Shown here: positions 3 to 61,342 of the stretch, in pieces | How the letters are laid out: each line of letters starts with the position of its first letter | Position numbering within the stretch: position 1 is the stretch's first letter | Source: Setoptus koraiensis | Taxonomy: Eukaryota > Animalia > Arthropoda | Direction of reading: 5' to 3' | NCBI GenBank assembly: GCA_048013815.1 | Contig: CM106585.1 | Coordinates: 6,820,001-6,884,000, forward strand | Length of the DNA: 64,000 bases | Made by a program: the position numbers and the translations under genes | The notes under the pieces: generated by a model | What the model saw: only the letters and a program-made list of their open reading frames with translations | What the model was told of the DNA's origin: nothing | Database searches by the model: none

Positions 3-3000
3 GATAAGGATTCTAATCTTTACGGTGAAATAAATTATACCCTCAGTGGATTTGAAGCAAAAAAGTTCAAACTTGACACGAAAACCGGAGAAATAATGAT
101 CGCGGACTGCGGCCAACCTCAATGCCTGGATTACGAGTCCGAGTCTATGTACTTTTTGACTTACGAAGCCCGTGATGGAGGAGGAAAGTTCGCAACTGCA
201 AGCCTTATTATTCAAGTTTTGGATACCAACGATCATGCGCCTGTGTTTTCAGAAAAAATCTACAGGAGGGAACTCATTACTGACAATATCAAAAACTACA
301 TTTCTCCTCCATTAGTCGTCAAAGCAAAAGACAATGATGGTCCTAACAACGGTGGCCAAGGAAATGTGAAATACAGTCTAAATGATTCAAACCTAACTGG
401 TCTTACAGTAGATCCTATAACTGGCCAAGTGTCCTTAACTAAACAATTGGATATAAAGAAATTAGTTCCTAAAACTTTCGTAGATCGGAAAATTGTTTTT
501 CAAGCTGAGGTGGTAGCCACAGACAACGGAGAACAACCATTGAGTGGAACTGCTTCGATTGTATTGATTCTTAAGGGTGATCGCGATGGAGCACCAAGAT
601 TTATAAATGAACCTTACCGTGTTACGGTGAGAGAAGACCAAAAACCTGATTTGACCATTTTCAAAGTCGAAGCAATCGATCCGGATGGTACCGATTCTCA
701 ACTACGTTATTCGGTGGGTTATGATAAGAATAGCCTCGTGAACATCAACGCAACCACTGGTGAACTATCCATTGACGCTAATGCTGATCTAGATTATAAT
801 TGTTTCAAAGATAAACGATACAATATCACTGTTTATACAACAGACAACGGAAAACCTTATCCTCTGAGTGCACAGACGACTGTAACACTTTTGATTGAAG
901 ATGTGAACAATAAGCCCCCGAAATTCAGAACAAATGAAGTTTCCTCCATCATCAATGCAGGCAGAACGATGGTCAATGATGTTGTGGCGAAAATGGAGGC
1001 CGATGATACTGATACGACCTCCATACTGAGATATTCCATAGATGGGGAACTTACAAATATCCGAGATCGCGGAGGAGTGTTGTTCACGCTAGACGACATA
1101 GTTAATTCAACAGATAACTATCTTAACGAGATGTCATCGAGGGATAGGATTGACATGCAAACTAGAATAACTAAAATGTTCAGCATTGATACAAGCACCG
1201 GTGACGTTCGGATGTTGATTGAACCAGATTACGCTTTTATATCTTTAGTCAACCTGACGATAAGAGTAACCGATGTGAATCAATTCAACCCATATGGACA
1301 GGAACCAGAGCAAACTGATGTAGCACATTGCTTGATATATTTACAAAATACTCTAGATAGAAGTCCCGTTTTCGCTGCTCCTTGGGGAAACAACGGGAGC
1401 AATTATGAAATCTCCATAGACGAGGAAATACAAGTTGGATCAACGATACTCACACTTGTAGCTAGAGATCCCCCAACAAATCAACCAATCAAAAATATTA
1501 TGAAGGTGACCGAAAGCGATCCTAAGAACTTCTTTAACGTTGAACCTGCAGGAATAGTCAGAATTGCTAAAAGGATTGACTACGAAGATTTACCATTTCC
1601 GAAGCAGCTTAGCCTAAGTGTCAGAGCTATTGGAAATTTGGAAGATAATGAAGTCCTAACAACAACAATGCGAATAATTGTCAAAGTTAATGATCTCAAT
1701 GACAATCCTCCCATTTTCTCCAGTGATTCCTACATAGGGAATGTGAGCGAATCGGCTGTTTTCCCTCATAACATACTTACTGTGTCAGCGGAGGATAAGG
1801 ATTCTAGCAGTCATGTATTCTACGATGTCTCCGGTCATGGTAGTGAATTGTTCGATATAGATTCAGGAGGATCGATATTCATCAGACGAAACGTAAGACT
1901 CGACAGAGAGTTGGAATCAATGTATTTACTGCAAGTTACTGCCAGTGATTGCAATAAAAACCAATCTTCAAATCCCGACCAGTCCGGTTGCAGTCGATCT
2001 TCTACATTTGTAACAATCAAGGTCTTGGATGAGAACGACAACAGGCCTCAATGGGTCATGCTGAATCAGGCCGGAGATTACGATGCAACGATACCTGAAA
2101 CCGCACCATTAGATAGTTTTATAATCCAAGTCAAAGCCATAGATTTAGATGAAGGCTTAAACTCTCAAATAGAATATGAATTATCGCATGGAGATAGTCT
2201 AATATCGAGATCTTTTAAGATTGACTCGGCAGGTTTTATAACTGTTGCAGCACCTATATTGGGTTTTGGACGCCCAAACCCCTACAGATTAAGTATAAGA
2301 GCCTATGACCATGGAAAGATAAGTCAATCATCAAACATCAATCTGATACTTACAATTAGTGATGTGGCCCAGAACGATGGAGTTCCGTTCTTTATTAAGC
2401 CGAAAATAGACGAAAAGATTTCCGTCTTTGAGAATGTAGGGCAAAACCACTTTGTGTACCAGGTGCTGGCACGAGATACTGATGATGAGTCTGCCAGTAA
2501 CAGTAGAGTGCTCTATCAATTCATGCAACCATCCAGCGTATTCGAAATTAATCCTTTTAGCGGAACTATCACAACATCAAATTGGCCAAACCTCTATCTA
2601 GATAGAGAATCGACCCCCAACTATACTCTAGTGGTAGTTGCTTCAGATACTGGAGTTCCCCCCAAGAAGGCTTACAGAACACTGAACATACAAGTTGAAG
2701 ATATAAATGACAATGAGCCATATTTCGAAAGAGACATTGATGATCCGCCGTTAGTATTGAATGTTGAAGAAGAAATGGAACCCAATAGCTATATTGGTAC
2801 GATACAGGCCATAGATAGAGACATTTCGAAGAATGCTATCATTAATTACGAGATTATTGAAGGAAACATGAATAATGTCTTCTTACTTAAGTTTGACATT
2901 GATAGTGAACAAGGAAACAATAAATGCGAAATTTATACTACTAAAAAGTTAGATCGAGAAGAAAGAGAGAGCTACACACTCACAATAAAAGCCAGCGGAC

Positions 3001-4430
3001 ATACAAAGTACAGCGATTCTATAATCAATGCCCTTCAGCACCATACAAGTAGGGGTAGCGACCCATTGATTAGCAAATTAACTGGACATCCCAGGCATCC
3101 GTCATATAACTCTACCGATCTAAGCAAGATGAGAATAACTATAAAATTGAATGACATCAACGACAACAAGCCTAAATTTAACAATCCCAACGCGAAATTG
3201 ATCGTAGACTCCAGCGTTGAGATATACAGTCAACTAACTCAGTTTCAGGCCTCCGATTTAGACTCGTCAGATACCAAAATCGAGTATACTCTGATAGATG
3301 TAATATACCATAGCGATAGTAACCTTATCAGTGATCCTGTCTCGTCGGAGCAGTACAAAACTAATCAGCCTGTGAGTGTCAAGCGTGTGTTTGAAATTGA
3401 TAGATCAACAGGAGTCTTACGCAATTTAGTGCCACTGAGACAGTTTGTCGATGGCTACTTCGAGATATTTGTGAAGGCCGATAGCGGTCTTTACAAGTTA
3501 ATCAAAGATAATACCGATGACACGGTTAATATGCAATTGATTCTGACACAAGCATTATCGAAATGTTCAAGAAATAGTTCTGAGCACAGTTACAATCAAC
3601 AAGATAACAATAACCTCATGAATCTGAGCGAATTGGACAACTGTTTTGTTACAACCACTAGGGCCACGTTATTCATTACTCATCAACGGGATACTTTCAG
3701 ATTTGTGTTCAACAAGACAAAGTTGAATGAAAAAATGGACGAATTTCGTGAAAAAATACAGTCTGCTCTTGAAACACAAATGATTGACGACGCTCACCAA
3801 AGAACACAATCGAGCGAATCTCTAGCCGCAGCTAGGACTGATAAACTTCTCCTGAATGTCTTCAACACAGAATTTTATGAAAAAGAAGACGGAAGTCTGG
3901 ATTATAGTACCATTACCTCTTGTTCACAGCTTGTAAAGTTTAATGAAAACATCCCCCAGCAGCAACCTTCAAGCGAACTACCTTATGACTTTAGTGGGCA
4001 GTTCGGACCAACCAATAATGGACTTTCCCAATCTAGCCAGAATCAGATCATCAGTTTTAGTCAAGCGATGGAAATGTTTAAGAATTTAAATGAAACGTCC
4101 CAAAAGACAAAGCAGCAGCAAATATTTGCTCAATACGGTCTCTTGGCAATTGAAAGATGCCTACCATCAAAGACAATGTATAAGATGACGAAATCCGAAT
4201 TGCTCGCTCTGATTGTTGCATCTTTAATTGCAGTAATCGGGTTAATATTAGCTTGTGTCAGCTCACGGATGAGAAAGAACTTCGAAAAAGACATCAATCT
4301 GTATCAGAATGCCAAATACCAATACATGAGTCATTACGCCACACTACCCGCTCACCAATCGAGAGCCATGCAACCGGTGTTAAATGGAAATCACTTTGCA
4401 CCACCTTACGGTGCCTATGATTACGAGTAA
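3..4430 (+). CDS. Non-classical cadherin (cadherin-23/Cad87A/Cad88C-like), 5' end outside the window, intronless over the visible part
   Basis: The frame is open from nt 3 (DKDSNLYGEINYTL...) to TAA at 4430. It has repeated EC-domain motifs (LDYE/LDRE, DxNDNxPxF, AxDxD), a membrane-adjacent non-EC region, one TM helix (LLALIVASLIAVIGLILACV) and a short Tyr-rich tail. Confidence 0.95.
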   Translation, partial: DKDSNLYGEINYTLSGFEAKKFKLDTKTGEIMIADCGQPQCLDYESESMYFLTYEARDGGGKFATASLIIQVLDTNDHAPVFSEKIYRRELITDNIKNYISPPLVVKAKDNDGPNNGGQGNVKYSLNDSNLTGLTVDPITGQVSLTKQLDIKKLVPKTFVDRKIVFQAEVVATDNGEQPLSGTASIVLILKGDRDGAPRFINEPYRVTVREDQKPDLTIFKVEAIDPDGTDSQLRYSVGYDKNSLVNINATTGELSIDANADLDYNCFKDKRYNITVYTTDNGKPYPLSAQTTVTLLIEDVNNKPPKFRTNEVSSIINAGRTMVNDVVAKMEADDTDTTSILRYSIDGELTNIRDRGGVLFTLDDIVNSTDNYLNEMSSRDRIDMQTRITKMFSIDTSTGDVRMLIEPDYAFISLVNLTIRVTDVNQFNPYGQEPEQTDVAHCLIYLQNTLDRSPVFAAPWGNNGSNYEISIDEEIQVGSTILTLVARDPPTNQPIKNIMKVTESDPKNFFNVEPAGIVRIAKRIDYEDLPFPKQLSLSVRAIGNLEDNEVLTTTMRIIVKVNDLNDNPPIFSSDSYIGNVSESAVFPHNILTVSAEDKDSSSHVFYDVSGHGSELFDIDSGGSIFIRRNVRLDRELESMYLLQVTASDCNKNQSSNPDQSGCSRSSTFVTIKVLDENDNRPQWVMLNQAGDYDATIPETAPLDSFIIQVKAIDLDEGLNSQIEYELSHGDSLISRSFKIDSAGFITVAAPILGFGRPNPYRLSIRAYDHGKISQSSNINLILTISDVAQNDGVPFFIKPKIDEKISVFENVGQNHFVYQVLARDTDDESASNSRVLYQFMQPSSVFEINPFSGTITTSNWPNLYLDRESTPNYTLVVVASDTGVPPKKAYRTLNIQVEDINDNEPYFERDIDDPPLVLNVEEEMEPNSYIGTIQAIDRDISKNAIINYEIIEGNMNNVFLLKFDIDSEQGNNKCEIYTTKKLDREERESYTLTIKASGHTKYSDSIINALQHHTSRGSDPLISKLTGHPRHPSYNSTDLSKMRITIKLNDINDNKPKFNNPNAKLIVDSSVEIYSQLTQFQASDLDSSDTKIEYTLIDVIYHSDSNLISDPVSSEQYKTNQPVSVKRVFEIDRSTGVLRNLVPLRQFVDGYFEIFVKADSGLYKLIKDNTDDTVNMQLILTQALSKCSRNSSEHSYNQQDNNNLMNLSELDNCFVTTTRATLFITHQRDTFRFVFNKTKLNEKMDEFREKIQSALETQMIDDAHQRTQSSESLAAARTDKLLLNVFNTEFYEKEDGSLDYSTITSCSQLVKFNENIPQQQPSSELPYDFSGQFGPTNNGLSQSSQNQIISFSQAMEMFKNLNETSQKTKQQQIFAQYGLLAIERCLPSKTMYKMTKSELLALIVASLIAVIGLILACVSSRMRKNFEKDINLYQNAKYQYMSHYATLPAHQSRAMQPVLNGNHFAPPYGAYDYE

Positions 4431-20054: not shown

Positions 20055-23000
20055 CTTCACAATCAAAGGAATTCCACCAGACGCAAACAGACGATGTTTG
20101 GCTGAAAATAGTACCGTTGGGACACCTACGTGATAAAATGTGAGATATTTAGATCAGAATAGATTGTTTTGATGGTGATGGTTATATAGTAAACAAATAG
20201 AACATGTTAAGATAACAGTGAAAATATGTCAATTATGATTCTGGTAAACAAAAGTTACATAAGTGCACTGTTAGCCAAAAGAAGAGAGACACTGTTGATT
20301 TTGCGACTGGCATACGAATAATTGGAGGCGTTATCAATAGATCACTCTGCAAATAATCGTCTGCAAATAATCGCGAAAAAGCCAAGCACTGCATAACGGT
20401 AAGACGACAGCCCACTGGAAAGCTGCAAAAATGGAGTTGGTCAAGTGTCACTTACAAGAAACTGTCCTGCCTTCCGTCGGCCTGACAAACGTGGAAAACC
20501 TGAATAACGCGATGGTATGAGTGAACCGTTAGTAAATAAACTGTTCATTTTGCGTATTGACATGTAAAATGTATGTAAAATGTGTCGGTCACTCACCTGG
20601 CAGCGCGCCTCAACATCGGCGTAATATCCGGGATACTTTTGGTCTCTACAGTTGAATTTGGTTTTGGGCACCTGCCAAAGGATCGGATAATCAACATTTG
20701 GCTCGCCCGGAATGGCGTCTTGCAACCACTTGATTGTGTCGTGATGACTGTGATGGCCGTGATGATCGCAATGGCTGTCAGCGTCATGATGGTCGTAATT
20801 GTGCTCATCATGATGATCCTCACTATTGCCGGGCTTGTCTTTGGGCATGTGATGCCCGTCAGCGACTGGTTGGTCGTCGGCGTCATTTGGACGCTTCTTG
20901 TTGCCGAAATTGTTCAAATCTTTGCCCTGGTCCATTGGCTTGCCCTCTGGCAAGTGATCATCGTCGACTGCCTGACCACCAGTGACTCTTTTGCCGTTAC
21001 TTGTGTTGTCTACCATTCCGAAATTAGAGGAATCAACTTTGTCGCCGGCTGTCAGCGGCTTGTCAGCGCGACCGGTGTCGTGTTTGTCTTTATCATCAAC
21101 TTCATCGCCGCTATTAGATTTCTCCAGCGATCTGTCTTGGGTGTCGTTGTCGCTGTTGTTGTTGTCGGTGTCGTTGTTGTTGCTGTTGCTGTCGCTGTTG
21201 TTGTCGCTGTTGCCGTTGCTGAAATTGCCGTCTTGCTCTTGCTCATCCATTCTAGTCTTATCTGAATCGGTGCCAACTGTATCAGTTGTATCGTTGTCCT
21301 TGCCGTTGCCAAAGTCGCTCTCTGCACTTCTATCCATGCCCGCCACTGAATCATCCATGCCAGTGGCAGCTCCGATGCCGGCGCCCACGCCGGCGCTTGC
21401 ATCGCCGCCCGTCGTCTTGTCACCTTGAGCGTCTGACGTGTGACTGAGATCTGGTGACAAAGAATCGTCTTCGTTGTTGCGATCACCGTTGTTCATCGCC
21501 GTTGTTGGCGCATCGTCGTCGTTGTTGTTGCTGTTGTTGTTGTTGCCTTGAGATTGCTCGCGGTCTCGGCGTGCCGCCCGGCCTTGATCGCCATCGATCC
21601 TCTCGTCGCTGTCAGCAACATCGTCGGCAATGGCGTCCCCTTGACGGTTAGCGGTGCTTGTCGGCGTGCGCTCGTCGGCTTGGTTGGCCTCGTCAAAATT
21701 GGGCTTGGGCTCGCCCACGTCGTCTATTCTGTCTGCATTTGTGTTCTGGCCATCGTCAAAATATTCTGGATCGTCGTCGACTCCGTCATATTTTGGCTCC
21801 ACGCTAACCACTTCCGGATTGTCGCCGTCCAACGGCGGCTCGCCTGTCTTGTTGTCGCGATCTGGCAGCGCGTTGCCAGCCTGCTCGTCGGCCTGTTCGT
21901 CGTCGTCGACGGTGTTGTCTCTGTGTCGCTTCGCGCCCGAATAGAAGGGGCTCTTGCGACTGGCCCCGGCCGAGCCTCCCTTGGTGGCGCCACCTTTGGT
22001 TGCGCCCACTGCGTCGTTCGCCATCGTCATCTTGTCCTGTGGCCGGCTCGCGATCTCGTCTTCGTCCACTGACTTTTTGTTGCTGCCACTGTCGCCCTGC
22101 TGCTCTGGCTGCTGCTGCTGATATCGGCCGTATTTCAGCGCGTTCATATGATACAAACGATTGTTTCTGTTCAGCTTGCGCTTCATCAGCGACATCCTCG
22201 ACGGCTTGCCTCTCGCTCTGCTGAGCCGGCCCGATTTCCGGTGCCGTCTGGCGCTGCCAGCAAGCGAGCCGGATGTGGCTCGCTTGTTCGTCTGTTGTTG
22301 TTGCGATTTGCTTCGTCTTCTTCGTTTTTTAAGCGATCGGCTGGCCATGCTGATCATTTTTCTCTTTTGGGCCAGCGACAATTGTTGGCGCTTTCTCCGC
22401 CGGCTGCTGCTGCCGCTCGTTTGTTGTTTCTGTAGCAGCGCCTTGCCGGCCAATTGGTCGGCCTTTTTCTTCCTCTTCAGCTTGGTCTGTTTCTTGTGAT
22501 GGTGGCTCGTGGTGGACGTCGACTCCACCTGAATCTCGCTGTAGTCAACATTGGACTGTGCTGTGGCCGCCGGCCGACCCATCACCAACGAACTGGACGA
22601 GGTGGACAGATTGTCCGCGTTGGGGCCCTTGCTGGCGCGCACTATTCGCGGCCGTACCGCGTACGCGGCCAGAAAGGGCACGTTGTTTTGCATTCGGCTT
22701 ATGATGTCAGGACTGAGCTCGTCGACGTCCGACGTTGTGGACGCCGTCCACACCTGATGAATTCTCGCCGGCTCGCTCACCTGATCCGCCGTTGCGAGCT
22801 GCTGCTGCTGCTGTCTCGTCTGTTTTTCTGGCTGCTGCTGGCCGCCGCCAGTGACAGCCAGCGTCGATTGGGGCGCCGTCACAGAGGCCACATTGACGTT
22901 GGAGGACGAGTCCTCCAGATCGTTGAGGCCGTCGCCGCCGCTCGACTTGGCCTCTGTTTTGTCGTGTTCGCGCTGCGCGCGATTCAATTCGGATTTGATT

Positions 23001-35789: not shown

Positions 35790-37157
35790 CTAACTGCATT
35801 CAAGATTGAATTCGTGACTCACAGTGTTAGTCAAAATTTGATTTTTTGGCGTTTCTTGCAACAAACAATTATCCAGCATGACACAATTTTGTTCATCTCT
35901 TTGCTGTATTTGGTTGTAAAATAAATGATTATAGCTGCCATTTCTATAGCGACCATCCTGTAGTTGAAATTCATCATCTCCTAGTGAACCAACTCGATTA
36001 TCGATTGATGGAAAAATTGTATGACTGAACTTGTTGTTTGTATCATTTAATTCATCATTCAATCTTGCAGCATGTCTTGATTGTTGAAACGGTTGCTCAA
36101 CCGGACGAGTACTTGACCCGAATTCATTGTTAATACTAATACAACTATATATGTCGTTGGGGTTGGCGATAGTCGCACATCTCATATTGACGTTAGTTTC
36201 GGCGATGCTATCATCAGTTGGGGTGAATATTGTCATAACATTGGTCGGATGGTAATAGTTTAATTGCTGATAATTGTAATCTCTACGAGCAAAATCAGTT
36301 GTTTCCGGTTCTCTATTCACTGTTACAACTTTGCTTTCTTTCTCGTCTACGCTCGGATGCGTTAATTTTGGACTTTCAATGGACGATATAGGAATAACGT
36401 ATCTAGTTGATGAGGATAACGTCGCACAATCTGTTTGTCTGATCATGTTTTTACTGATCGCATTGATGATGGGCCCTTGGTGCATCGATTGCAACAATGG
36501 CTCTCCGATAGGATCGTGTCTGTCTAGATTAGTGGTTTGCGGCTGATGGGACATTGGAAAAAAATCGCAAGAACTACAACTATTGTTGTCATTAGCGTTG
36601 ATGTAAATTAAAGTGTTTTGTTCGCCTGTTGATTGTCGACAATTACTTGTGGTGATCACTTGCAAGTCGCTTGTTTTTGTCATTCTGTCTACTCTTTTTG
36701 TTTTCATGCGTCGATTCTGAAACCAGACCTTGATCTGGCGTTCACTTAGTTCAAGTTTATTGGCAATCTCAATTCTTCTGGGCCTACATAAATATTGATT
36801 AATTGTAAATTCGCCCTCAAGAATATTCAATTGTTTTTGGGTGTAGGCTGTTCGCAATCTTCTGCCGACTGCATTTGTGATTTTGATGCGGCGATTTTTA
36901 ACAACTACAGTTGTTTTGCATTTGTCCGATGTGACGGCACTCGATGATTGTTGGTCACCATTTGATTGATAGTAATTCTGCTTATATGTAATATCTGATT
37001 CATGCCGGTTGCCATCAACTAACATTGTCTTGATTGGTTCCGATGGTCGACATGCTTCTGTATTAGTCATTTGTACTTGAACAGGTATTGCGACTGCACC
37101 ATTGTTTAACTGACTAGTTACTGAAGCGCATGATGATTCTTGTGGGGATGCAAACAT
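35790..37157 (-). CDS. ANTP-class Hox-like homeodomain protein, paralogy group 2/3 (proboscipedia/Hox3-like), intronless, 455 aa
   Basis: The homeodomain at ~36690..36863 reads [64 protein letters not shown] is diagnostic for PG2/PG3-type domains. Confidence 0.9.
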
Positions 37158-44101: not shown

Positions 44102-47100
44102 TTAGTATGAAGAGTTACTTCTCAATGAGCGATTTGAGGAGCGGTTATTTGTATTATTGTTCTCCGTTGTTTGCTCTTGTCGCTCTTCATGTTCCTCTTG
44201 TGCTTCCTGTTCGTCCTGATCCTCTTGCTCCTCTTGCTCTTCTTGCTCTTCTTGCTCTTCTTCCTCACCTTCCATCAGTACTGGCTTGACAGCAAGTTTG
44301 ATTTTAGCTTCAAAATCGTCCAGAAGCTGCTTGGTTTCAACTCTTATATTTGGAGTTTTTCTGAAATTCACAATGATCGACGTGATCGACTCATTGACAG
44401 ATTCTATGCATAGCTTGTCCTTGTAGAAATTGAAGTTATCAAACAATTTTCCTAAAGTCTTGTCGGAGTATTTCATCAAGCTAAGACAGAATGCCAAATC
44501 GCACCATTGTCGCTCTATTATAGTGTCAGAGAAACGTTTGCACAATTTTTCCATCAGTTTGTCGACATGACGATCCTTATCAATCAACTCAAACAAGAAT
44601 TTCATCACTATTCGGAAATTTTCCTCTGTCACTCCGAGCTTGGGGTCTGATAGACGCGAAATGATATCCGGCAGGACATTGTAAATCGCATTCAATTTCT
44701 TACTTAATTCAGCGAAGAAATATCTTGAGCATGAAGACAAATCTTCATCATCATCAACCATGAGGTTCGCAATGTTGCTTATTTGACCTTTGACTTTAAT
44801 CATATCTGACAGAATGAGTCTTGATAGGACTTTCAAAGATGCCTTACGAACTCGCACATCCGCATTTTGCAAACAGTCGAATAAGTGTGAAGTCCATGGA
44901 TCCAAAAGATTGGGAAACCTGATGCAGAGATCGCTCACTGCAATAATCAAGTTTATCTTGATCTCGCTCTCTTTTGACTTCTCCAAAATAGTGAATAGGA
45001 GTCTGAGATGTTCACTACAGAACTTTTCACTGACCATCATATACTTGGCAAGACATAGTGTTGCTGCTAACCGTAATTCTAAACTTGGATATCGACTAGG
45101 GTCTCGTGAGACTATGTTAATAACTTTACTCATCTTGCCTAAAAGATTGCCTCCGACCACCAATTCGTCATCACACATGGCCTCCAAAAATTCCATTTCT
45201 GCATCTTCAAGAGCATTCGCTCCACCTAGACCTATTTCTTCCTCAAGGTTCATTTCGGTCATTGATGCAGATAGGGAAGGTCGACCAAATCTTCTAGATC
45301 TCCTTCGACTGGATAAACTAACATTATGAAGGCTCTTGCGGTTTTCTTTCTCTTCGCGAAGGCCATTCCTCTGTTTTAGTTCGATGAAGACATTGAGCTC
45401 CAAATGTACAGTCAAATTCAAAGCGACTGAGCCTATGAAATGAAGAAATCTAGCAAGATAAATTGAATTTACTTTATCCGGCGCCTGAGCGTTTTCATTC
45501 AATGGCTCAGTTCGTTCAGTGCCAGCTGAGTTTTGAGAGATTGTGCGCGTCTCAACTCTTGCTCTTTTCTGGCGACTGCTATCATTACTATCATGTTCCG
45601 AGCTATTACTAGTGTTAGGACTTCCCCTCGAATCATTTGGTGTTTCTACAAGGTCCGGAGACTCAATCCGACCGCCAGTTCCATTAATAGTTGGCTGAGT
45701 GAAAATTCCGGAAGCGTTTTGGGCATGACTCAGCAATTCATCAACCATTCTACAGTAAATTTTCTCGCAAATTATCTCTGGATTTTCGGACATTTTGAAT
45801 ATTACTTTGATGGCCTCGTCACACATGGAATACCAATGAGTACAGTTGACGTTGTGTAGACTATCTACAAGGATATCGGATAAACGAGTAAATAATGGCT
45901 CGCTTCTCGATAGCCTTTTTAGGTACGCTGTCTTATCCTCCATACTCAGCTTTTTAGGCAAACTTTTTTGGAGTGCTATGCAAGTTTCTCTGATGAAGCG
46001 CGAGTCAAGTTCAGGTTGTGCCCATCCATTTGTAGCTAATCCATGCTTGACGCACAAGTCTGAATTGTCGTTGATGATGTTCGGTTCAGATCTGGCTAAC
46101 ATTCCTATAAGTTGAATTGAGGCAACACATTGGCTTAGCGTGGTATCTTGTTTTTTCATGGTAAACCTGGCCCATAATTCTTGTTGCATGCCCTTCGTAA
46201 AGTCGCCACTGGCCAAAAAGTTACCCATCAGAACTTCTAATGAAACCATTTCGCCGATCGATGCATGCTCAATGAAGTTGATGAAGTTTAGAACAGTCAA
46301 GTTATTTTTTTCTGCTTGATTGTGACCTTCATATCTACTTGATTCGAAAAAGATTTTCTTGTAAGCATTGGTGACGGTCTCTTTGATAGATTTTTCTGGT
46401 GAGTTTATCAAGAGTATCATTTTTTTGAATCCAACAAGGGCTTCATCTATTCCAAAATTATGACAACACACAAAGAAATCAACAGCTTCTTGAATGTCGG
46501 TAATGCTTTTGGAGTATAATAATTCACAGATGATAGGAATTGATTTATGGATGTGCTCTGTGAATAGTATTGAATCCAAGAGATATCTGACTTGTCTTCT
46601 CTTGATGACTATAGGGTCCTGTGAGGGAGTGACATTGTCTAAAGTTTGATTGAGAATGTCTTTTGTCTTATTAGCTGCCTGAGAGTTGTTTTCAGTTCTT
46701 TGCGAATCGTTTTCAACCTCAGTATCACTACCTTCACCATCTTCATCCTGATCTATCACAGTCTTGTTGGATTCACTTTCTTGAGAAGACTTAGCTCCAT
46801 CAGACATTGCTGCAGCCTGATTCTTTAGTTCCTCCTCTTCAATCAGTTTCTTGAGTACCTCTTTTTCTTCCTCGTATTTCTGTTTGAAAGTATGGAGAGG
46901 CAAACGTTGAGCAAATGGGTTGTTTTGTAACACACTTATAAGATAACGTACTGCACTTTTGCGCACAAAACATGATTTGTCCTGCAACCGTTGAACTATT
47001 CTGCCAGTAACCTTATCTAATCTACGGAGGGGGATGGCGTTTTTTTCACTCAACATACACCAAACCGAAATAGCCTTAGATCTCGTGTAACTTGTAATAT

Positions 47101-48361
47101 CTTGAACATGCATGAAAAGGCATTCTAGCAGTTCATCTCTGAGTTGTTTCTGGTTTTCATCCAAATCGTCGTGACTCAATGATATGAAGACAATATTACC
47201 AATAATTGATAAGGCTGCATTCCGCATCAAATATGAATCTTGTTCGAGAAAATCCAGAACATGTGAAAGGGATGGTGTAAATTCTTTGGGACATTTCTCA
47301 GATAGTTCTAACAAAAAAGTTGATATGGCTCTTGGGCAGGAAGAGTCCCTAGTTAATTCCCTGATATCAATCCTCTCTATCTCCCTAAGTATTTCACCTA
47401 TCAATAATCTCTGGTTATTCCTAGTAACAATATGTACCACGAGACCGGCTAGTAGAGAAGCCAGTTGTTCTTTGTGTTGCAATAGTTGTATAATCTTCAA
47501 ACAAAAACTTAAAGATTGATTGTATTTCTCAATACCACAACCCAAAATATTAAAGGCGTGATCTAGCAATTCGGCACTTTTTGTGATGTTATTTATGGCT
47601 GAATTTTCCAAGAGTTTATAGCTTGTTCGCATTATAAGGCCAACTACGTCTTGAACTCCTGTGTTTGAGTCAAATAGTCGTTGCAATGGCAGTGACATCA
47701 ATCGAAGCAAGGAACCGACGGCCCTCTCCTTGTATCTTTCATACTCCTTACTTTTGTCTTGATGTGAGGTCTTGTTTTTCTTTACTCTCTTGTTGGAGTT
47801 CTCTTGTTCGCTGAAACTTTCATTAAAAGCCCGACGATGATTCTTTGAGGTCTCTAACTCTTCGAACTGTTCTATGAAGGTGCATGTGGTGAATACCAAC
47901 ATCTTCAGCGTATTACATGTGGCTTGTTTCTCATGTGGCGACTCAAACAGAGCCTGGCGTTGTGATTGAGACATATTGATGTCTTCTTGTCGCTGGGAAT
48001 CATTCAAAGCACTATCGTCCAACAATTTCGACGTGTTCCTTTGTGAATAGGCTGCTTGCACGGATTTGAAGAGATCTTTGAGACTCTCTTGAAAGGTGAG
48101 CGTGGCCTTGTAGGCCAATGTCCATGTTCTATCTACAACTCTTGGTTCTAATGTTGTGAAATTTTTCAATACTGAAAAGAAAACTTCAAAATCCTGACAC
48201 AAAGCGGTAGGATCCTCGTTGAGGTGCGCCTCACATTCTGGTAATTTTAATGAGATTTCCCTAGCGGTTAGCTCATCGTTGACATAGTAGACATTTGGAT
48301 CATCGTTGGCGTGAAGAAGATCCTCCAATTTTTGCGGTATCACAAATCTAAGATTGTCCAT
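44102..48361 (-). CDS. NCAPD2: Condensin complex subunit 1 (CAP-D2/Cnd1), intronless, 1419 aa
   Basis: N-terminal FVIP motif, HEAT repeats (YLMRNAAL, DITSYTRSKA, LQDKSCFVRKSA) and the Cnd1 domain (LCLAKYMMVSEKFC, DLCIRFPNLLDPWT, LILSDMIKVKGQIS, IYNVLPDIISRLSD). Confidence 0.97.
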   Translation of the reverse strand: MDNLRFVIPQKLEDLLHANDDPNVYYVNDELTAREISLKLPECEAHLNEDPTALCQDFEVFFSVLKNFTTLEPRVVDRTWTLAYKATLTFQESLKDLFKSVQAAYSQRNTSKLLDDSALNDSQRQEDINMSQSQRQALFESPHEKQATCNTLKMLVFTTCTFIEQFEELETSKNHRRAFNESFSEQENSNKRVKKNKTSHQDKSKEYERYKERAVGSLLRLMSLPLQRLFDSNTGVQDVVGLIMRTSYKLLENSAINNITKSAELLDHAFNILGCGIEKYNQSLSFCLKIIQLLQHKEQLASLLAGLVVHIVTRNNQRLLIGEILREIERIDIRELTRDSSCPRAISTFLLELSEKCPKEFTPSLSHVLDFLEQDSYLMRNAALSIIGNIVFISLSHDDLDENQKQLRDELLECLFMHVQDITSYTRSKAISVWCMLSEKNAIPLRRLDKVTGRIVQRLQDKSCFVRKSAVRYLISVLQNNPFAQRLPLHTFKQKYEEEKEVLKKLIEEEELKNQAAAMSDGAKSSQESESNKTVIDQDEDGEGSDTEVENDSQRTENNSQAANKTKDILNQTLDNVTPSQDPIVIKRRQVRYLLDSILFTEHIHKSIPIICELLYSKSITDIQEAVDFFVCCHNFGIDEALVGFKKMILLINSPEKSIKETVTNAYKKIFFESSRYEGHNQAEKNNLTVLNFINFIEHASIGEMVSLEVLMGNFLASGDFTKGMQQELWARFTMKKQDTTLSQCVASIQLIGMLARSEPNIINDNSDLCVKHGLATNGWAQPELDSRFIRETCIALQKSLPKKLSMEDKTAYLKRLSRSEPLFTRLSDILVDSLHNVNCTHWYSMCDEAIKVIFKMSENPEIICEKIYCRMVDELLSHAQNASGIFTQPTINGTGGRIESPDLVETPNDSRGSPNTSNSSEHDSNDSSRQKRARVETRTISQNSAGTERTEPLNENAQAPDKVNSIYLARFLHFIGSVALNLTVHLELNVFIELKQRNGLREEKENRKSLHNVSLSSRRRSRRFGRPSLSASMTEMNLEEEIGLGGANALEDAEMEFLEAMCDDELVVGGNLLGKMSKVINIVSRDPSRYPSLELRLAATLCLAKYMMVSEKFCSEHLRLLFTILEKSKESEIKINLIIAVSDLCIRFPNLLDPWTSHLFDCLQNADVRVRKASLKVLSRLILSDMIKVKGQISNIANLMVDDDEDLSSCSRYFFAELSKKLNAIYNVLPDIISRLSDPKLGVTEENFRIVMKFLFELIDKDRHVDKLMEKLCKRFSDTIIERQWCDLAFCLSLMKYSDKTLGKLFDNFNFYKDKLCIESVNESITSIIVNFRKTPNIRVETKQLLDDFEAKIKLAVKPVLMEGEEEEQEEQEEQEEQEDQDEQEAQEEHEERQEQTTENNNTNNRSSNRSLRSNSSY

Positions 48362-49071: not shown

Positions 49072-50946
49072 ATGAACGACAGACAACACAGCGCTGCCCC
49101 AGAAGAATTTCTGGCGGAATTTCTCGTTAGAGCCCAGAAACGTCAGGCTAAATTGGAGGAAGGAGACACCTCTCTACAGCCAGCCTCTAAGATTTATCAT
49201 GCAGAGAGAATCGTAACGAGCAACGACGACGAACCTTCTTCTGATGCCGATGAGCCCGCCTCTCGTGCCGTCCATCCACCCATACTCAGAAAGATAGAGG
49301 CTTTGGAAGTGTCACGATCTCCAAAGGATTTTGTTGAACAAGCCGAGAAACTATTCGATGCGAGATCTCAAGCAAACAATTCTATTGTCGACAGTTCCCT
49401 TCGTAGACTGTCCACAATAGAAGATGAAGACGAAGGCGAAGATATAGTGGAGCGGGAGAGCCCTCCCACCGAAAATCTCTCGGCAAAACTGCCTGATGAT
49501 GAGGCTGATTACGAAGATGATCCTCTTGATCTATCAGAATACTTGGATGGTCCAATTTTGTATAGGGATGATGAACCATGCGAACGGTCTGATTCAGAGT
49601 CAGTACTCAAAGAGGCTTCCACTAACGATCTTAAATACTCCCTATCTACTTACAGAAAAGAGAAGAAGCACAAGACTCCCAGTGCACCTCCAATCGTTTA
49701 TGCAGTACCATCATCCACGGAAAATCTGAATAAGGCCGACAATGAAGAATTGATCAAATGTTACGAGGATAAAATCAGAAAAGTCACCAACTTCATCAAG
49801 GAGACAGGAAAAGCTCTAGATTTATGTTATGATGATCCCAAACTTCGCGGTACGGAACAACATTTAGAGTATGAAAAACTATTGCTTGAGTCATCATTTA
49901 AACAGCTCGTATACTCAAATGAGATGGCAAAGATACGACAATTGAAAAAACAAATTTCTCAAGACGGTACTACTGGTACTATAAGGTTGCACCCAATATC
50001 GCTTCAACTCACCAACACACTATTACAATCTACGAAGGAAGACAAAGTGCTACACTGCTTCTTGTGTCTTGCTCGTTGTGGACCCGAAGTTCAATGTACC
50101 GAATTGATTACATCGCGTAGTATTAGAAACAGGATCATCAAATTTGTAACTCCTTTGGTTTTTCAAAATATTCCCACAAATTTTCAGCTACTATTCGAGG
50201 TATATGAACTGGTGGACGAACATCCAAAAAGTAGGAAAGATCTCAATTTTTTCGCTCCTTTGACACCATCTAAGAGGTCTACGAAACATGTCACGAATCT
50301 GCTCACCCCTTCATCACTTCTGAAAACACGTAGAACTGCCTTCAAGAGTATAGGAATGTTGCATATGAAGTTAGACCAATGTCAGAATGTATCATTCAAG
50401 CTTGATCATGTTCCAGAGCCTGGATCTATCGACCCAAAAGTCACAATGGGTATCACTCTGAATGCTGTGCATACTATAGTCAAAAAAGGTATGCTCCACC
50501 TTTTGACTGAGTCAAATGAATATCCTGATTGGATACGAAGGTGGTTCGTACTAAAAGATGGAAAATTGAAATTTTGGCGTCATCCCGAAGATGAAAGTGA
50601 GGATGAGACTGCAAGCCCGCCTATGGGTCAAATAGATTTATCCAGATGCAACTGTGCTAAAGTTACCCCATGTTCTCCTCTGGACGACTTTTATCGTCAG
50701 AATTCATTTGTGTTCTACACATCAAGGCGAGTTCTGGAAGATGAAACTAATAATCTCCTAGAGCGGGTATATCATAATGAGAAAATGATCAAACATCAAA
50801 TGGCTACCAGCACGAAAGATGAACGGAACTCATGGTTAGAGGCACTTAACTTCGCAATCGATACTATTCGCCGGTGGAGGAGTACTCCGGTCAACATAAT
50901 GGACGAGGCGGTGATCAAAAAAGTCATGTCCTCAGCTAAACAATGA
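49072..50946 (+). CDS. ANLN: Anillin-like protein (RhoA-binding coiled coil, anillin homology domain, PH domain), intronless, 624 aa
   Basis: KALDLC...GTEQHLEYEKLLL, the AH-domain FELYEL-like segment and the PH domain GMLHL...WIRRWFVLKDGKLKFWRHPEDE...PMGQIDL. Confidence 0.88.
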   Translation: MNDRQHSAAPEEFLAEFLVRAQKRQAKLEEGDTSLQPASKIYHAERIVTSNDDEPSSDADEPASRAVHPPILRKIEALEVSRSPKDFVEQAEKLFDARSQANNSIVDSSLRRLSTIEDEDEGEDIVERESPPTENLSAKLPDDEADYEDDPLDLSEYLDGPILYRDDEPCERSDSESVLKEASTNDLKYSLSTYRKEKKHKTPSAPPIVYAVPSSTENLNKADNEELIKCYEDKIRKVTNFIKETGKALDLCYDDPKLRGTEQHLEYEKLLLESSFKQLVYSNEMAKIRQLKKQISQDGTTGTIRLHPISLQLTNTLLQSTKEDKVLHCFLCLARCGPEVQCTELITSRSIRNRIIKFVTPLVFQNIPTNFQLLFEVYELVDEHPKSRKDLNFFAPLTPSKRSTKHVTNLLTPSSLLKTRRTAFKSIGMLHMKLDQCQNVSFKLDHVPEPGSIDPKVTMGITLNAVHTIVKKGMLHLLTESNEYPDWIRRWFVLKDGKLKFWRHPEDESEDETASPPMGQIDLSRCNCAKVTPCSPLDDFYRQNSFVFYTSRRVLEDETNNLLERVYHNEKMIKHQMATSTKDERNSWLEALNFAIDTIRRWRSTPVNIMDEAVIKKVMSSAKQ

Positions 50947-54590: not shown

Positions 54591-55928
54591 ATGACGATTA
54601 TAGAAGAAGAAGATTGTGAAAATCCAAAGAGAGCAACAAAAGTTTCTATTGCTGGTGATTCAAAGCGAAGTAAAAATCGAGATGGAAAAAGAACATTGAA
54701 AGATCGCATCTATTGGATTGAGTGGATGTTTAGACTAACGGGTTCAATCAAATTAACCAATTCGCTGGCGATCAATACTATTCAGCGATTACTTATCACT
54801 GGGTTTACTTATGCTTACTATATTTGGGTAGCCAGAATTTCAAACAAAAATTCGCACCCTATTTATTTAGGCTCATTGAAGAACTTACATGTAATTGGCA
54901 TGATTCGGTATTTTGGGCTAATTTTCCTTGCAGAGTTTACTTCCGTCATGGCCAATGTGGCAGCATTCGTGCCAGGAGTATTGAATTATCACTACATTGA
55001 TTTGATTTTAAAAAAGAGCGACTGCGACGATATATCAGATCTGCTTCACAGTGACAAAATAAAGGGCAAGATAAATAGGAGCGTTCCTAGAAACTTTATT
55101 TGTGGCTTGAAAGAATTCATGAGAAATTATGGTTATTATGGTTATTTTTGGTTTGCTTCAATGTTTGCATTAATCTGTGTCATTTATTTAGTTGAAGAAG
55201 AGCCCTTTCTTCAAGTATTGAATCTAGCGCCTATAAACCATATATTAATTTGTAATATCACTTCAATATATTACATATTATATAGAATAACATTGTCTAC
55301 CTCAGATCGAATAGCTCTATTGGTAGCCAGAAGAAATGTGTTACCAATGACAGTTATTTTGGATACACTTGCGCAAATCCGTGATGTAATGCTACTAATC
55401 AGACAACAGATCAGTCTACCTCTCTATGTATTATATTCGCATGTATTATTTTATTTCGCGAGACGCCTCTTTACTATCATCGATTCAATTAAGACAAAAC
55501 AACAGACCGTTTTCATGTGTCTGCTGTTGAACTATTCCTCTAAAATAGCTCTCTTGTTATTGATAATCGATGGATATCGAAGAATTTATGAGAACTCTCG
55601 ACTGTTGTTGCATCTATTAGAGGCCACTAATTATCTGGGATCAACAGATTCTCCCTTGAAGCCAATGCTCAATGAATTGAACGAGCTCACGAGAAAGAAT
55701 GACATTCGTCTACTGAGACGTCTAGTCAAGGATATCTGCTGTATTGGACCATCGAATTGGTTCAATCCAAGTATGAGAGATTTAATTGTTCTTAATTTAG
55801 TGATTATAACAACTGTTATCTCGGTCAATGAACTATCAGACTTTGCCGAAAAACTGGAGGGTAAAAAATTGTCGGCTACTGTTGTTTCAAATGGCAACCC
55901 ATTTCCGTCACTGAACAGAACCTTGTAA
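54591..55928 (+). CDS. Divergent 7-TM gustatory-receptor-like (7tm_7 / GR superfamily) protein, intronless, 445 aa
   Basis: About 7 hydrophobic segments with GR-like spacing: TM5 QQISLPLYVLYSHV, TM6 KIALLLLIIDGYRRIYEN, and a TM7 region IGPSNWFNP...LVIITTVISV. The canonical TY...QF motif is not conserved. Confidence 0.6.
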   Translation: MTIIEEEDCENPKRATKVSIAGDSKRSKNRDGKRTLKDRIYWIEWMFRLTGSIKLTNSLAINTIQRLLITGFTYAYYIWVARISNKNSHPIYLGSLKNLHVIGMIRYFGLIFLAEFTSVMANVAAFVPGVLNYHYIDLILKKSDCDDISDLLHSDKIKGKINRSVPRNFICGLKEFMRNYGYYGYFWFASMFALICVIYLVEEEPFLQVLNLAPINHILICNITSIYYILYRITLSTSDRIALLVARRNVLPMTVILDTLAQIRDVMLLIRQQISLPLYVLYSHVLFYFARRLFTIIDSIKTKQQTVFMCLLLNYSSKIALLLLIIDGYRRIYENSRLLLHLLEATNYLGSTDSPLKPMLNELNELTRKNDIRLLRRLVKDICCIGPSNWFNPSMRDLIVLNLVIITTVISVNELSDFAEKLEGKKLSATVVSNGNPFPSLNRTL

Positions 55929-57412: not shown

Positions 57413-59821
57413 ATGTGGCAGCAACAGCAGCTACAACAACAACAACAAAATTCCTACATGGAATCGTCTAATAATCTTTACAATTCTGCAGGTGATGCGG
57501 AACAACCAATTGAATCCGGTGATTTGATGAACGACGAAAATCAAATTCCAAATGATTGGTCTCATGGACTAGATACAAACCACCAACAACAATACCAACC
57601 AATGAATGGAATGAACAAATTCCATCAAGGTTCCATTAATGGCATCAATCATCAATCTAGCTCTGTAGCCTATGGAGTTGTCAACAAAAACCCCAACCAA
57701 AACCAGCAACAACAGCACTATCCAATGCATCAATCCTCTTTTACTGGAGATCAAGTTGATGCTATGAGCCAACAATTGTCCCAAACGACCACGCAGAGGG
57801 TCACTGCCGCCATGTATCCGGAAACTATGAACGAAGGCGTTGAGATTCCATCAACACAATATGACAGCCAGCCTACAGCAGTTCAACGACTTAGCGAACC
57901 ATCTCAGATGCTTAAGCATGCTGTCATCAATCTCATCAACTATCAAGATGACGCAGATCTTGCCACAAGGGCAATACCAGAATTAATAAAATTGTTGAAT
58001 GACGAAGATCGTGTAGTTGCAAGTCAGGCTGCTATGATAGTTCATCAACTATCCAAGAAAGAAGCCTCCAGACATGCTCTGTCTGCATCTCCACAGATTG
58101 TCAAAGCCCTTCTGCAAGTGTTGGAATACTCAGATGACCGCGAAACATCAAAATCTGCAGCCGGGGTCTTACACAACTTATCATTAAACCAGCACGGTCT
58201 TCTTGCCATTTTCAAAACAGGAGGCATCCGAGCTCTCATTCAAGCACTTAATTCACCGATAGACGCAGTAGTTTATCATGCAATAACCACCTTGCATAAT
58301 CTGTTGCTACATCAAGATGGAGCGAAAATGAATGTCAGACTCAATGGAGGATTACAAAAAATGGTTAGTCTGCTTCAGCGCAACAATCACAAGTTTTTAG
58401 CGATTCTAGCAGATTGTTTACAAATTCTAGCATATGGAAATCAAGAGGGAAAATTGATTATATTAGCAAGTGGAGGACCTGCCGAGCTCGTTAAAATATT
58501 ACATTCGTTCACTTATGAGAAATTACTTTTCACGACAGCTAGAGTGTTGAAGGTTTTATCAGTTTGCCCTAGTAATAAACCTGCAATCATTCAAGCTGAT
58601 GGCATGCAGGCCCTGTCGGTCTGTCTCAATAATCAAAGCAGACGCCTCGTACAAGAATGTCTGTGGGCTTTGAGAAATCTAAGTGTAGGTGCAACAAAAG
58701 AAGTCAACATGGAACCTCTGCTTCAGAAACTTATACAATTACTGAATGATCCAGACATTAATATTGTGACTTGCGCCGTTGGAATTCTATCAAATCTAAC
58801 TTGCAATAATCAGACAAACAAACGTTTTGTTTTCAACATAGGAGGTGTTCAAGCTTTGATTCAGACAATTCGATCGGCAAGCGATAGGGAAGAAATCACA
58901 GAACCAGCCGCATGCGCTCTTCGCCATATAACCAATAGACATCCAGATGCCGAGGCTGCTCAAAATGCAGTTAGGTTGCAAGGAGGTCTTCCAGATGTAT
59001 CAAAACTGCTCGACCCACCTGGTAGATGGCCACTGTCCACGGCGGCTGCAGGCCTCATTCGGAATCTATCTCTCAGTCCAACTAACTTGCCGATGTTACG
59101 TGATCTCGGAGTTCTACAAAAACTTTCACTTCTTTTGAGCAAAGCTTTCCAAGCTCTCCAAGAATCTCCCGAGCAATCTGCCCATTTGGCTGGCATCAAA
59201 ATGGAGCGAGTGATAGAAAGCGTTCTAAGTGCGCTCCATGCCATGGCTACTGATTTCCAGAATCGAAGCATAATTTATAGTATGAACATGATTCCAACGC
59301 TCATGTCACTTCTTTATAGCGAGCACGAGAGTATTATATTGGTAGCCTTAGATTTGATGGCAGAATTGGCTACAGATGGTGAAATAGCCTCAACACTGGA
59401 GGCTCAAGGTGCATCTCAGCCTCTTTCCAATTTGTTGAGCTCCCCTAGCGAAGCATTAAGGCAAAGAGCAGCCTTGCTTTACTCTCAACTTTCGGACGAT
59501 AAAGCACCAGAATACACTAATCGGTTGTCTAATGAGATTAATACTTTATTTCAGAGTGAAAATCCTGATGTGTCAGGAGGGCATTGGGTTCCTCAGAATC
59601 TAGATATGCCCTCTATGTTCGCTACCGAAGATCAAGGAACTTTACCCGTGCACCCCGAAGGTAGCCGACAGAATATATACTCCGCTTATGCTCCTCAAGA
59701 TCAGATGGAAGTAGCCGGTTACGGGAGAACAATTCAAAACGTTGCCCCCAAACCATTAGTCGACAACAATCAACAGCAGCCGAAGCAACCCCATGAGCCA
59801 TGGTTCGACACGGATTTGTAA
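57413..59821 (+). CDS. arm: Beta-catenin/armadillo, intronless, 802 aa, divergent
   Basis: [42 protein letters not shown], 12 Arm repeats ([28 protein letters not shown]) and C-terminal WFDTDL. Confidence 0.97.
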
Positions 59822-60123: not shown

Positions 60124-60870
60124 TCAACGATCCGAGCGTTTTCTCTTTTTTCCTGCGGCTCCCTTGGAGTACTTAGCCTCTAAGTTAGCTATCATGGAAT
60201 CGAATCCGGCTTGTGATCTACCTTGTATGAGGGCTTTAAGATCACCAATGTTTTCTTCATCTTTTGTTTCGCTAGCTTTTTTGAGTTGTCTGGCCTCTTT
60301 CTTCGCCTTACGAATTCGCTTATCACGCTTCGATTGAGGTTCGTCAACAAACTTATCAAAGGCTTCAACTTCACCGGATGCAATCATTTTCTCTATCATT
60401 TCTCGCGAAGCTTCCTCATCGAATCCGATGTGGCACTGAGAGATTTTATCCATATCGCCTTTGTATCTTATATATATAGCTTTGAGATCTTCTTGCTCCT
60501 CTTTAGAATTCTTGTAATCATTTAAAAATTTTGTGATATCATCACTTGAAACTTTTGGAAACAATAGGCGCCAATATTGTTGCCAATCTGCTTCTGAGTT
60601 GAGGCCATCCTCATTCATTATGATGCCATGATCATCGTACATCTTTCGACGTTCCTCATCAGATAGAATGAAATGTACCTGAGCAAGAATTTGAAATTTT
60701 TTAGTAAACTCTTCTTTTTTCTCGTTAGATACACGATCTGGATGTATCTTCAAAGAAAGTTTCCTGTATCCTTTCTTGATTTGCTCATTGCTAGCATCCT
60801 TTTTTACGCCTAAAACCTGATACAAATCTGACGTTCCGAAGGCTTCCTCTATATCTTGAAGAAGTGTCAT
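60124..60870 (-). CDS. DNAJC9: DnaJ homolog subfamily C member 9, 248 aa (true ATG at 60870)
   Basis: The J domain (DLYQVLGV...YRKLSLKIHPD) is followed by DNAJC9-type WQQYWRLLF, YKNSKEEQEDL and FDSMIANLEAKY. Confidence 0.93.
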   Translation of the reverse strand: MTLLQDIEEAFGTSDLYQVLGVKKDASNEQIKKGYRKLSLKIHPDRVSNEKKEEFTKKFQILAQVHFILSDEERRKMYDDHGIIMNEDGLNSEADWQQYWRLLFPKVSSDDITKFLNDYKNSKEEQEDLKAIYIRYKGDMDKISQCHIGFDEEASREMIEKMIASGEVEAFDKFVDEPQSKRDKRIRKAKKEARQLKKASETKDEENIGDLKALIQGRSQAGFDSMIANLEAKYSKGAAGKKRKRSDR

Positions 60871-61177
60871 TATGGTATAGAGATGAGTGGATTTACTCGT
60901 TGAATTTAGACGATAGTAATAGTTTGTAAGAACCAACAGATAGTTTTGATAATACAGATATTGATATATATGACCAGTCGGTAGGTTTGTAGCGGTATGG
61001 ATTTGTATTGTTTCACGAGTTGAGTTCTTTGCATGTGTGAAAGAGAATTGTGGACCGTGTGTGTCTGTTTGTTGTGACGATGGTGCCAACCTCAGCACAA
61101 TGACGCATGAGGGCGCTTTTGGTACCGAATTGAGTGTAACAGAGACAGTCAACAAATCCTTGTTGTTCACCGAATAA

Positions 61178-61185
61178 TATCGATA
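61178..61185. promoter_or_regulatory. DRE-like palindrome TATCGATA in the divergent DNAJC9/ALG14 promoter
   Basis: Exact DRE consensus between two head-to-head housekeeping genes; a second copy is at 33063..33070. Confidence 0.5.
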
Positions 61186-61342
61186 ACTCAAAAGTTTTCA
61201 CAATTATTACGTTATTACATCAGTCAAATACAATCTACATTAGTTGTGGATAAAATTTCAGAACTGAATCTCATTGTCTCGGCCAATCATCTTTAATTGT
61301 TTCAATAGTTTGTTCAGGGAATTGTGCTCAAGCAAATAAAAC

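Follow-up and report, generated by a model that had tools for sequence, protein, structure and literature searches.

Wnt signals set the level of beta-catenin by way of its N-terminal phosphodegron, a motif whose conservation extends from sponges to humans and which is hit by mutation in many cancers of humans. Stabilized N-terminal mutants include Drosophila Arm-S10, which has an N-terminal deletion, and the oncogenic exon-3/S33-S45 forms of human CTNNB1. In planarians, the surface for Wnt components is gone from beta-catenin-2, which fails to bind either beta-TrCP or TCF, and planarian beta-catenin-3/4 and Drosophila Neural Arm are C-terminally truncated inhibitory forms (PMC5643146). The armadillo (arm) gene described here lies in a stretch of 64,000 nucleotides from Setoptus koraiensis (GenBank assembly GCA_048013815.1, contig CM106585.1, positions 6,820,001 to 6,884,000, forward strand), which is referred to as the window in subsequent discussion. 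It encodes a beta-catenin from which the degron is absent, as it is from the 21 closest relatives of the protein that were recovered in a homolog search.

The armadillo gene and its N terminus

Positions 57413..59821 on the plus strand form a single unbroken open reading frame (ORF) of 802 codons plus a stop, encoding Armadillo/beta-catenin. The full-length zebrafish beta-catenin structure (PDB 2z6g) matches residues 106-716 of the window protein with an E value of 5e-228, human ARM-domain structures match it at approximately 1e-198, and Pfam finds Arm repeats at 4e-34. Overall identity to canonical beta-catenin/Armadillo is 54-57%. In an AlphaFold2 model based on a 44-sequence alignment, the predicted local distance difference test score exceeds 90 over approximately residues 180-700, with the helices of twelve repeats visible. 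The model places helix C at residues 699-714, and disorder is predicted for residues 14-111 and 721-802. Judged from these matches and from the phylogeny below, the gene is orthologous to Armadillo/beta-catenin and comes from an eriophyoid (gall) mite that branched off early. The parts of the gene, all on the plus strand, are as follows, with relatives designated by the numbers P0003 onward and human residue numbering transferred through the 2z6g alignment offsets.

57413..59821, plus strand: complete single-exon Armadillo/beta-catenin coding sequence (ORF list, PDB 2z6g match, Pfam Arm, and upstream stop)
57413..57559, plus strand: segment N1, residues 1-49 (MWQQ ... NDW), located where canonical proteins have WQQ-degron-FDW (sequence and W2-W49 spacing)
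57425..57448, plus strand: eight-residue Q-rich insertion QQLQQQQQ between MWQQ and NSYM (read directly; not in relatives)
57461..57511, plus strand: residues 17-33, the expected place of DSGIHSGATTxAPSLSG under an in-place alignment (alignments and spacing)
57512..57529, plus strand: ESGDLM, residues 34-39 (not conserved in P0003-P0006; second Ser absent)
57623..57688, plus strand: clade-specific motif of segment N2, residues 71-92 (HQRQASFGQxNNSSVAYGFVGR in crown species), conserved in long and medium forms
57869..57955, plus strand: alpha-catenin-binding region, equivalent to human 118-146 and including Y142 (window Y177) (2z6g alignment and residue table)
57938..59497, plus strand: twelve armadillo repeats, equivalent to human 141-664 (AlphaFold2, 2z6g alignment, and per-repeat identities)
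59507..59554, plus strand: helix C, residues 699-714, with the S675 equivalent kept (AlphaFold2)
59555..59818, plus strand: disordered C-terminal tail with the PDZ-binding end WFDTDL (sequence and AlphaFold2)

One database protein was unsuitable as a numbering reference. The sturgeon entry P0002 ("UNVERIFIED_CONTAM," 1048 residues) is a beta-catenin model that is internally duplicated or chimeric after approximately residue 440.

No part of the window codes for a recognizable degron. A six-frame scan of the whole 64 kb was negative for DSGxx[ST] in any context resembling beta-catenin. When six canonical chelicerate and myriapod N termini were compared with the window by tblastn, matches were found only from position 57722 onward, in the FTxxQVDxMxQQL...RVxAAM(F/Y)PE region. 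At residues 17-33 of the window protein there is no Ser/Thr ladder resembling S33/S37/T41/S45. An in-frame stop lies 5 codons 5' of the arm ATG, and the upstream gene ends at 55928, leaving 1.5 kb for the arm promoter and 5' untranslated region. The absence of DSGxxS that had been reported from the sequence-only reading of this DNA is therefore well founded.

That reading also held that the degron had been substituted in situ, with the flanking MWQQ..NSY retained, and these claims were only partly supported. The spacing from W to DW is 47 in the window, including the Q-rich insertion, and 40 in P0003-P0005; canonical proteins have spacings of 36-51 (median, 43). However, a profile of the canonical WQQ-to-FDW degron segment gave no significant alignment to N1 or N2, and its score on the window N1 was negative. 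In crown species the same profile prefers N2 over N1, and the MAFFT alignment likewise matches N2 to the columns of the degron. In-place substitution thus fits the W-to-W spacing, the single observation in its favor, which falls short of proof. The MWQQ..NSY flank is whole in the window but only there: three relatives have just MWQQ or MWHQ, P0006 has MFRQ, and most relatives start downstream. The further suggestion that ESGDLM is a remnant of the degron was not upheld, because the motif is conserved in no relative and is probably a chance occurrence.

The eriophyoid clade and its N termini

In the homolog search, in which the best 120 of 1498 matches were viewed, 21 proteins (P0003-P0021, P0023, and P0034) formed a distinct top group with 59-68% identity to the window protein. 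One of them, P0019, bears an Armadillo annotation and belongs to Aceria tosichella, an eriophyoid mite, and the other 20 come from Logan or ENA assemblies. A maximum-likelihood tree from a quick IQ-TREE search united all 22 proteins in one clade with a support of 100 in the SH-like approximate likelihood ratio test, and within it the first split separates the window protein from its 21 relatives (support, 97). The same clade was recovered with a second taxon sample. Its stem is approximately 1 substitution per site, versus approximately 0.1 for other arthropod branches, and this long stem prevents placement of the 22 sequences within Acariformes. The phylogeny, which the sequence-only reading had proposed as a check, thus places the gene within a clade-wide eriophyoid form that includes the Aceria Armadillo.

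The degron is missing throughout this clade. A full-length motif scan of all 22 proteins found no DSGxxS; the sole degron-like match, SSGIES, falls within the ARM domain of a single protein and is due to chance. In contrast, DSGxx[ST] is present in 94 of the 99 nonclade matches listed, the other five having ESGYQS or short or alternative N termini. Among the proteins read, DSGxxS is carried by those of ticks, spiders, scorpions, the horseshoe crab, oribatid and trombidiform mites, myriapods, crustaceans, and insects. In an exhaustive search of cluster representatives, even those down to approximately 30% identity still retain DSG(I/V/F)x(S/T), a measure of how firmly selection usually keeps the motif. 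Further degron-less representatives exist, but these are placed elsewhere in the tree. Because the motif is missing from all 22 sequences, its loss is dated to the eriophyoid stem. Degron loss therefore looks lineage-wide in eriophyoids, as read from these sequences, rather than a quirk of one gene copy.

Another intronless and degron-less beta-catenin was noted outside the clade. P0130 (667 residues; L009:5001-7004, NCBI GCA_014898815.1, JAAABK010000140.1) starts just before the RIRAALF motif, ends in WYDTDL, is flanked by F-box genes, and groups weakly with acariform mites. It may represent an independent degron loss or a retro-paralog in another mite.

The genomic context of the related genes was also evaluated. 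In the contigs of six clade proteins, each arm gene is a single uninterrupted ORF, and in-frame stops were found 7 to 21 codons upstream of arm in the three relatives tested. Six-frame motif scans and tblastn of five related contigs revealed no hidden WQQ or DSG coding sequence. An alternative 5' exon carrying the degron, which according to the sequence-only reading would overturn it if seen in cDNA, was found neither in the window nor on these contigs. The gene order CBS-domain gene, L7Ae (minus strand), arm (plus), EF1-gamma (minus), and UTP25 (plus) is kept in five crown contigs (L001, L005, L006, L007, and L008), which supports orthology among crown species. The neighbors of arm in the window differ from this order, consistent with a deep position of the window lineage. 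Genes beside arm in the window are likewise single ORFs, indicating that missing introns are a trait of the genome and are not specific to arm; eriophyoid genomes retain a minority of introns (PMC7738191). A retrogene origin of the intronless arm was considered and ruled out, because the neighbors and all orthologs are single ORFs and crown synteny is kept (see also PMC7738191).

The N terminus shortens in a graded manner across the clade. The long form, found in the window and in P0003-P0006, begins with MWQQ or MWHQ (in P0006 with MFRQ, without the Trp), and its start Met corresponds to a position approximately 35-45 residues inside the protein in other arthropods. Approximately 11 clade sequences begin at a downstream Met (MQQQQYY...), and the Aceria group (P0008, P0016, and P0019) begins approximately 40 residues before QRVAAAMYPE. 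P0010 begins just before QRVAAAMYPE, and P0018 and P0034 begin at its MYP, so that the regulatory N terminus is wholly absent. This gradation shows that the N terminus kept decaying after the degron was lost.

Substitution rates are consistent with this pattern. The ratio of nonsynonymous to synonymous substitutions (dN/dS), estimated from the closest species pair (P0004 versus P0005), is 0.37 in N1, 0.06 in N2, 0.02 in the alpha-catenin region and repeats 1-9, 0.04 in repeats 10-12, and 0.07 in the C terminus. The segment at the degron position therefore evolves approximately 10 times faster than the rest; no other part of the protein is under weaker constraint, and the remainder is strongly conserved. 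The N2 motif has no counterpart in canonical beta-catenins and is predicted to be disordered.

Partner surfaces, proposed function, and alternatives

Most of the surfaces through which beta-catenin contacts its partners are preserved. The sequence-only reading had listed NYQDDA, LNDED, EGKLI (K312), TNKRF (K435), LWALRN (W383/R386), and the C-terminal WFDTDL as kept, and all can be read in the ORF. Further residues retained in the window protein are Y142, L156, L159, D162, D164, L178, H260, K292, K335, R342, K345, N387, N426, R469, H470, and S675. Among the residues tested as contacts of alpha-catenin, BCL9/Legless, Axin, TCF, cadherin, and APC, variation across the 22 sequences was seen at F253 (F/Y/A/S); apart from this position and the stem changes described below, all are invariant. 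For example, Y142 is identical in 22 of 22 sequences, as are K312, K345, W383, R386, and the TCF contacts N426, K435, R469, and H470. The Axin contacts H260 and K292 are also invariant, as are L156, L159, D162, D164, and L178, which are specific to BCL9/Legless.

The last repeats of the ARM domain have been remodeled. Repeats 10-12 have 28-49% identity to spider Armadillo, versus 59-90% for repeats 1-9, and the Y654 equivalent is Arg, in agreement with the sequence-only reading, which had called these repeats divergent and Y654 lost. Clade-wide changes in repeats 9-12 are K508T (Ala in two sequences), R582T/I/V, R612I/L, and Y654R; at the first three of these positions the window protein has Thr, Thr, and Leu. 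The S552 loop is shortened in the window protein, a deletion found throughout the clade. Repeats 10-12 of the window protein are 61-78% identical to those of typical crown species (P0003 and P0005). Because these repeats are alike within the clade yet far from canonical, a burst of change on the stem was followed by purifying selection. Helix C is nearly invariant in the clade and 40% identical to that of spider Armadillo. In the C-terminal tail, the islands GSRQNIY, GYGR, and EPWFDTDL are near-invariant in the clade, and T800, D801, and L802 are invariant over 44 aligned sequences. Helix C and the C terminus are under strong purifying selection (dN/dS, ≤0.07).

The reading best supported by these results is that a degron-less but otherwise complete beta-catenin is probably the main or only copy in the eriophyoid lineage, with the functional consequences proposed here. 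As far as can be read from the protein, the destruction-complex insensitivity proposed in the sequence-only reading is borne out: neither the window protein nor its 21 closest relatives have a CK1/GSK3/beta-TrCP degron, and the window protein most likely escapes GSK3/beta-TrCP-dependent destruction. Besides the adhesion sites, the protein keeps the BCL9 knob and the Axin groove as well as helix C and the islands of the C terminus, which favors a dual-function protein over one confined to junctions. The mite beta-catenin may therefore still serve adhesion as well as nuclear signaling, with its level no longer set by phosphorylation-dependent SCF-beta-TrCP/Slimb destruction. If Wnt control has been kept, it would have to act without the degron, and cytoplasmic anchoring and release by Axin or titration by cadherin would be among the most plausible means. 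In Drosophila, a control of beta-catenin that is independent of degradation has been described, in which Axin anchors the protein in the cytoplasm. The stem remodeling of repeats 10-12 may reflect changed partners. How Wnt signaling might be gated in the absence of the degron is speculation. The sequence-only reading had also raised a rewired Wnt pathway in case this is the sole copy; that possibility fits the evidence better than an adhesion paralog does, but remains unproven.

Several considerations weigh against this interpretation. Many of the kept contact residues also take part in cadherin binding or have a structural role, and their conservation is thus no proof of signaling. Throughout the clade, the C-terminal transactivation region lacks its canonical acidic block, DLNFD. 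Furthermore, the degron search covered the 64-kb window, and a second full-length copy bearing the degron is possible elsewhere in the genome.

If the interpretation is correct, a whole animal lineage lives with a degron-less, otherwise complete beta-catenin, and these mites provide a natural experiment on Wnt/beta-catenin regulation without the destruction step, or on development when beta-catenin is unregulated. The loss could then be linked to the extreme reduction of body plan and genome in eriophyoid mites, and parts of the protein that covary with it, including repeats 10-12 and the N2 motif, could be recognized. In a literature search, no publication was found that deals with Armadillo, beta-catenin, or the makeup of the Wnt pathway in eriophyoids. 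A broader idea, which we advance only tentatively, is that gall mites may have dismantled beta-TrCP/Slimb-dependent switching in developmental signaling, so that Wnt (and Hedgehog) output would be set independently of degradation.

One alternative is that Axin/GSK3-based turnover persists through a noncanonical site or another E3 ligase, with N2 (HQRQASFGQxNNSSVAYGFVG) as the candidate replacement degron. The motif is strongly constrained, is conserved from the window to the crown, and is set under the canonical degron columns by MAFFT. However, N2 contains neither D/E-S-G nor an S-x-x-x-S ladder, and a profile of the canonical degron segment matches it only insignificantly. It is missing from the shortest forms, including Aceria, and the window form lacks the Arg of RQxS. 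The motif is also predicted to be disordered, without docking. A cryptic degron of this kind is therefore considered unlikely.

It is also conceivable that the protein is the sole copy but has lost signaling, acting only at junctions, with no beta-catenin/TCF transcription and with Wnt ligands working through beta-catenin-independent routes. The loss of the degron and the eroding N terminus would be expected in this case, as would the missing acidic block and S552 loop and the alteration of repeats 9-12 by Y654R and K508T. Eriophyoids are also known to have lost many developmental regulators (PMC7738191; bioRxiv 10.64898/2026.08.24.746826). However, the invariance of the BCL9/Legless residues and the strong purifying selection on helix C and the C-terminal islands argue against a protein released from signaling, which makes this explanation improbable.

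The sequence-only reading had preferred an adhesion-specialized paralog, comparable to HMP-2 or planarian beta-catenin-2; in that case, a canonical degron-bearing signaling copy would exist elsewhere in eriophyoid genomes. Degron-less beta-catenins with a DTDL end do recur among database representatives, the long stem branch is what would be expected of a released paralog, and the alpha-catenin site and PDZ tail are retained. A canonical eriophyoid copy could also sit below the best 120 of the 1498 matches. However, among the matches listed, no protein of the canonical type lies on a multikilobase intronless Logan contig such as eriophyoid genes yield; the canonical "lgn" proteins lie on transcript-sized contigs of approximately 3 kb. 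The BCL9, Axin, and TCF contacts are invariant, and helix C, although remodeled relative to the canonical form, is near-invariant in the clade, with the C terminus under purifying selection. The planarian adhesion paralog lost its Wnt-component surface (PMC5643146), and the mite protein did not. The gene is clade-wide in eriophyoids and has conserved synteny in the crown, and eriophyoid genomes are extremely gene-poor, that of S. koraiensis having 47 Mb, two chromosomes, and 5,954 genes (PMC11920263). An adhesion paralog thus appears to be a poor explanation for this gene.

An annotation artefact, with the degron on an unrecognized upstream exon or alternative 5' transcript, is very improbable: the ORF does contain a good acceptor-like site (ttctgcag|G at approximately 57484-57492) and eriophyoid genomes do keep a minority of introns (PMC7738191), but no frame of the 57 kb upstream has degron-like coding sequence, the next gene ends 1.5 kb upstream, contigs of five other species likewise lack degron-like sequence, and N-terminal erosion is graded across the clade.

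Neighboring genes and known beta-catenins

Other genes in the window include the following.

20441-22987, minus strand: 847-residue ORF with no Pfam match
35790-37157, minus strand: 455-residue homeodomain protein, single ORF
44102-48361, minus strand: condensin subunit Cnd1, single ORF
49072-50946, plus strand: anillin-like protein with anillin and PH domains, single ORF
54591-55928, plus strand: 445-residue multipass ORF with no Pfam match, upstream of arm
60124-61191, minus strand: DNAJC9, single ORF, downstream of arm

Also downstream of arm are single ORFs for a Brix-like protein and a small protein of mitochondrial type. Near the start of the window, positions 96-4430 on the plus strand encode a 1444-residue cadherin with at least seven cadherin repeats and one transmembrane segment, and this ORF may extend past the window start. 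The protein was considered as a coevolving partner of Arm, but it is not a classical cadherin, because its tail of approximately 55 residues has no catenin-binding domain. In one crown eriophyoid, a tankyrase-like gene with ankyrin repeats and a PARP domain (L005:2639-4798) lies two genes upstream of arm. Its N terminus, LSNYEDDDDLTNRVIPELVR, resembles a stretch of Armadillo (tblastn E value, 6e-4).

Compared with canonical bilaterian beta-catenins (human CTNNB1, Drosophila Arm, tick P0025, and spider P0031), the mite protein is alike in its twelve ARM repeats and helix C, in the alpha-catenin motif with Y142, in the K312/K435 buttons, in the Axin, BCL9, TCF, and APC contacts, in the S675 equivalent, and in the W(F/Y)DTDL end. 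It differs in having no DSGxxS/T41/S45 ladder, nothing upstream of MWQQ, and a clade-specific N2 motif. It further differs in its remodeled repeats 10-12 (K508T, R582T, R612L, and Y654R), its deleted S552 loop, and its missing acidic C-terminal block.

The mite protein may be a natural counterpart of the stabilized N-terminal mutants. Arm-S10 and the exon-3 mutants, like the mite protein, have lost the beta-TrCP degron and have an intact ARM domain and C terminus, and by this analogy the mite protein most likely works as they do. However, those are laboratory or somatic mutants with constitutive signaling, whereas the mite state is fixed and maintained in a whole lineage.

Caenorhabditis elegans HMP-2 and Smed-beta-catenin-2 resemble the mite protein in having no functional GSK3/beta-TrCP degron while keeping the alpha-catenin site and a PDZ-type end. 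Both coexist with signaling paralogs, whereas the mite protein appears to be the sole full-length ortholog of its lineage, although this is unproven. The mite protein also keeps residues of the Wnt-component surface that planarian beta-catenin-2 lost. Planarian beta-catenin-3/4, in contrast, keep their GSK3 sites, and the mite gene is full-length rather than truncated.

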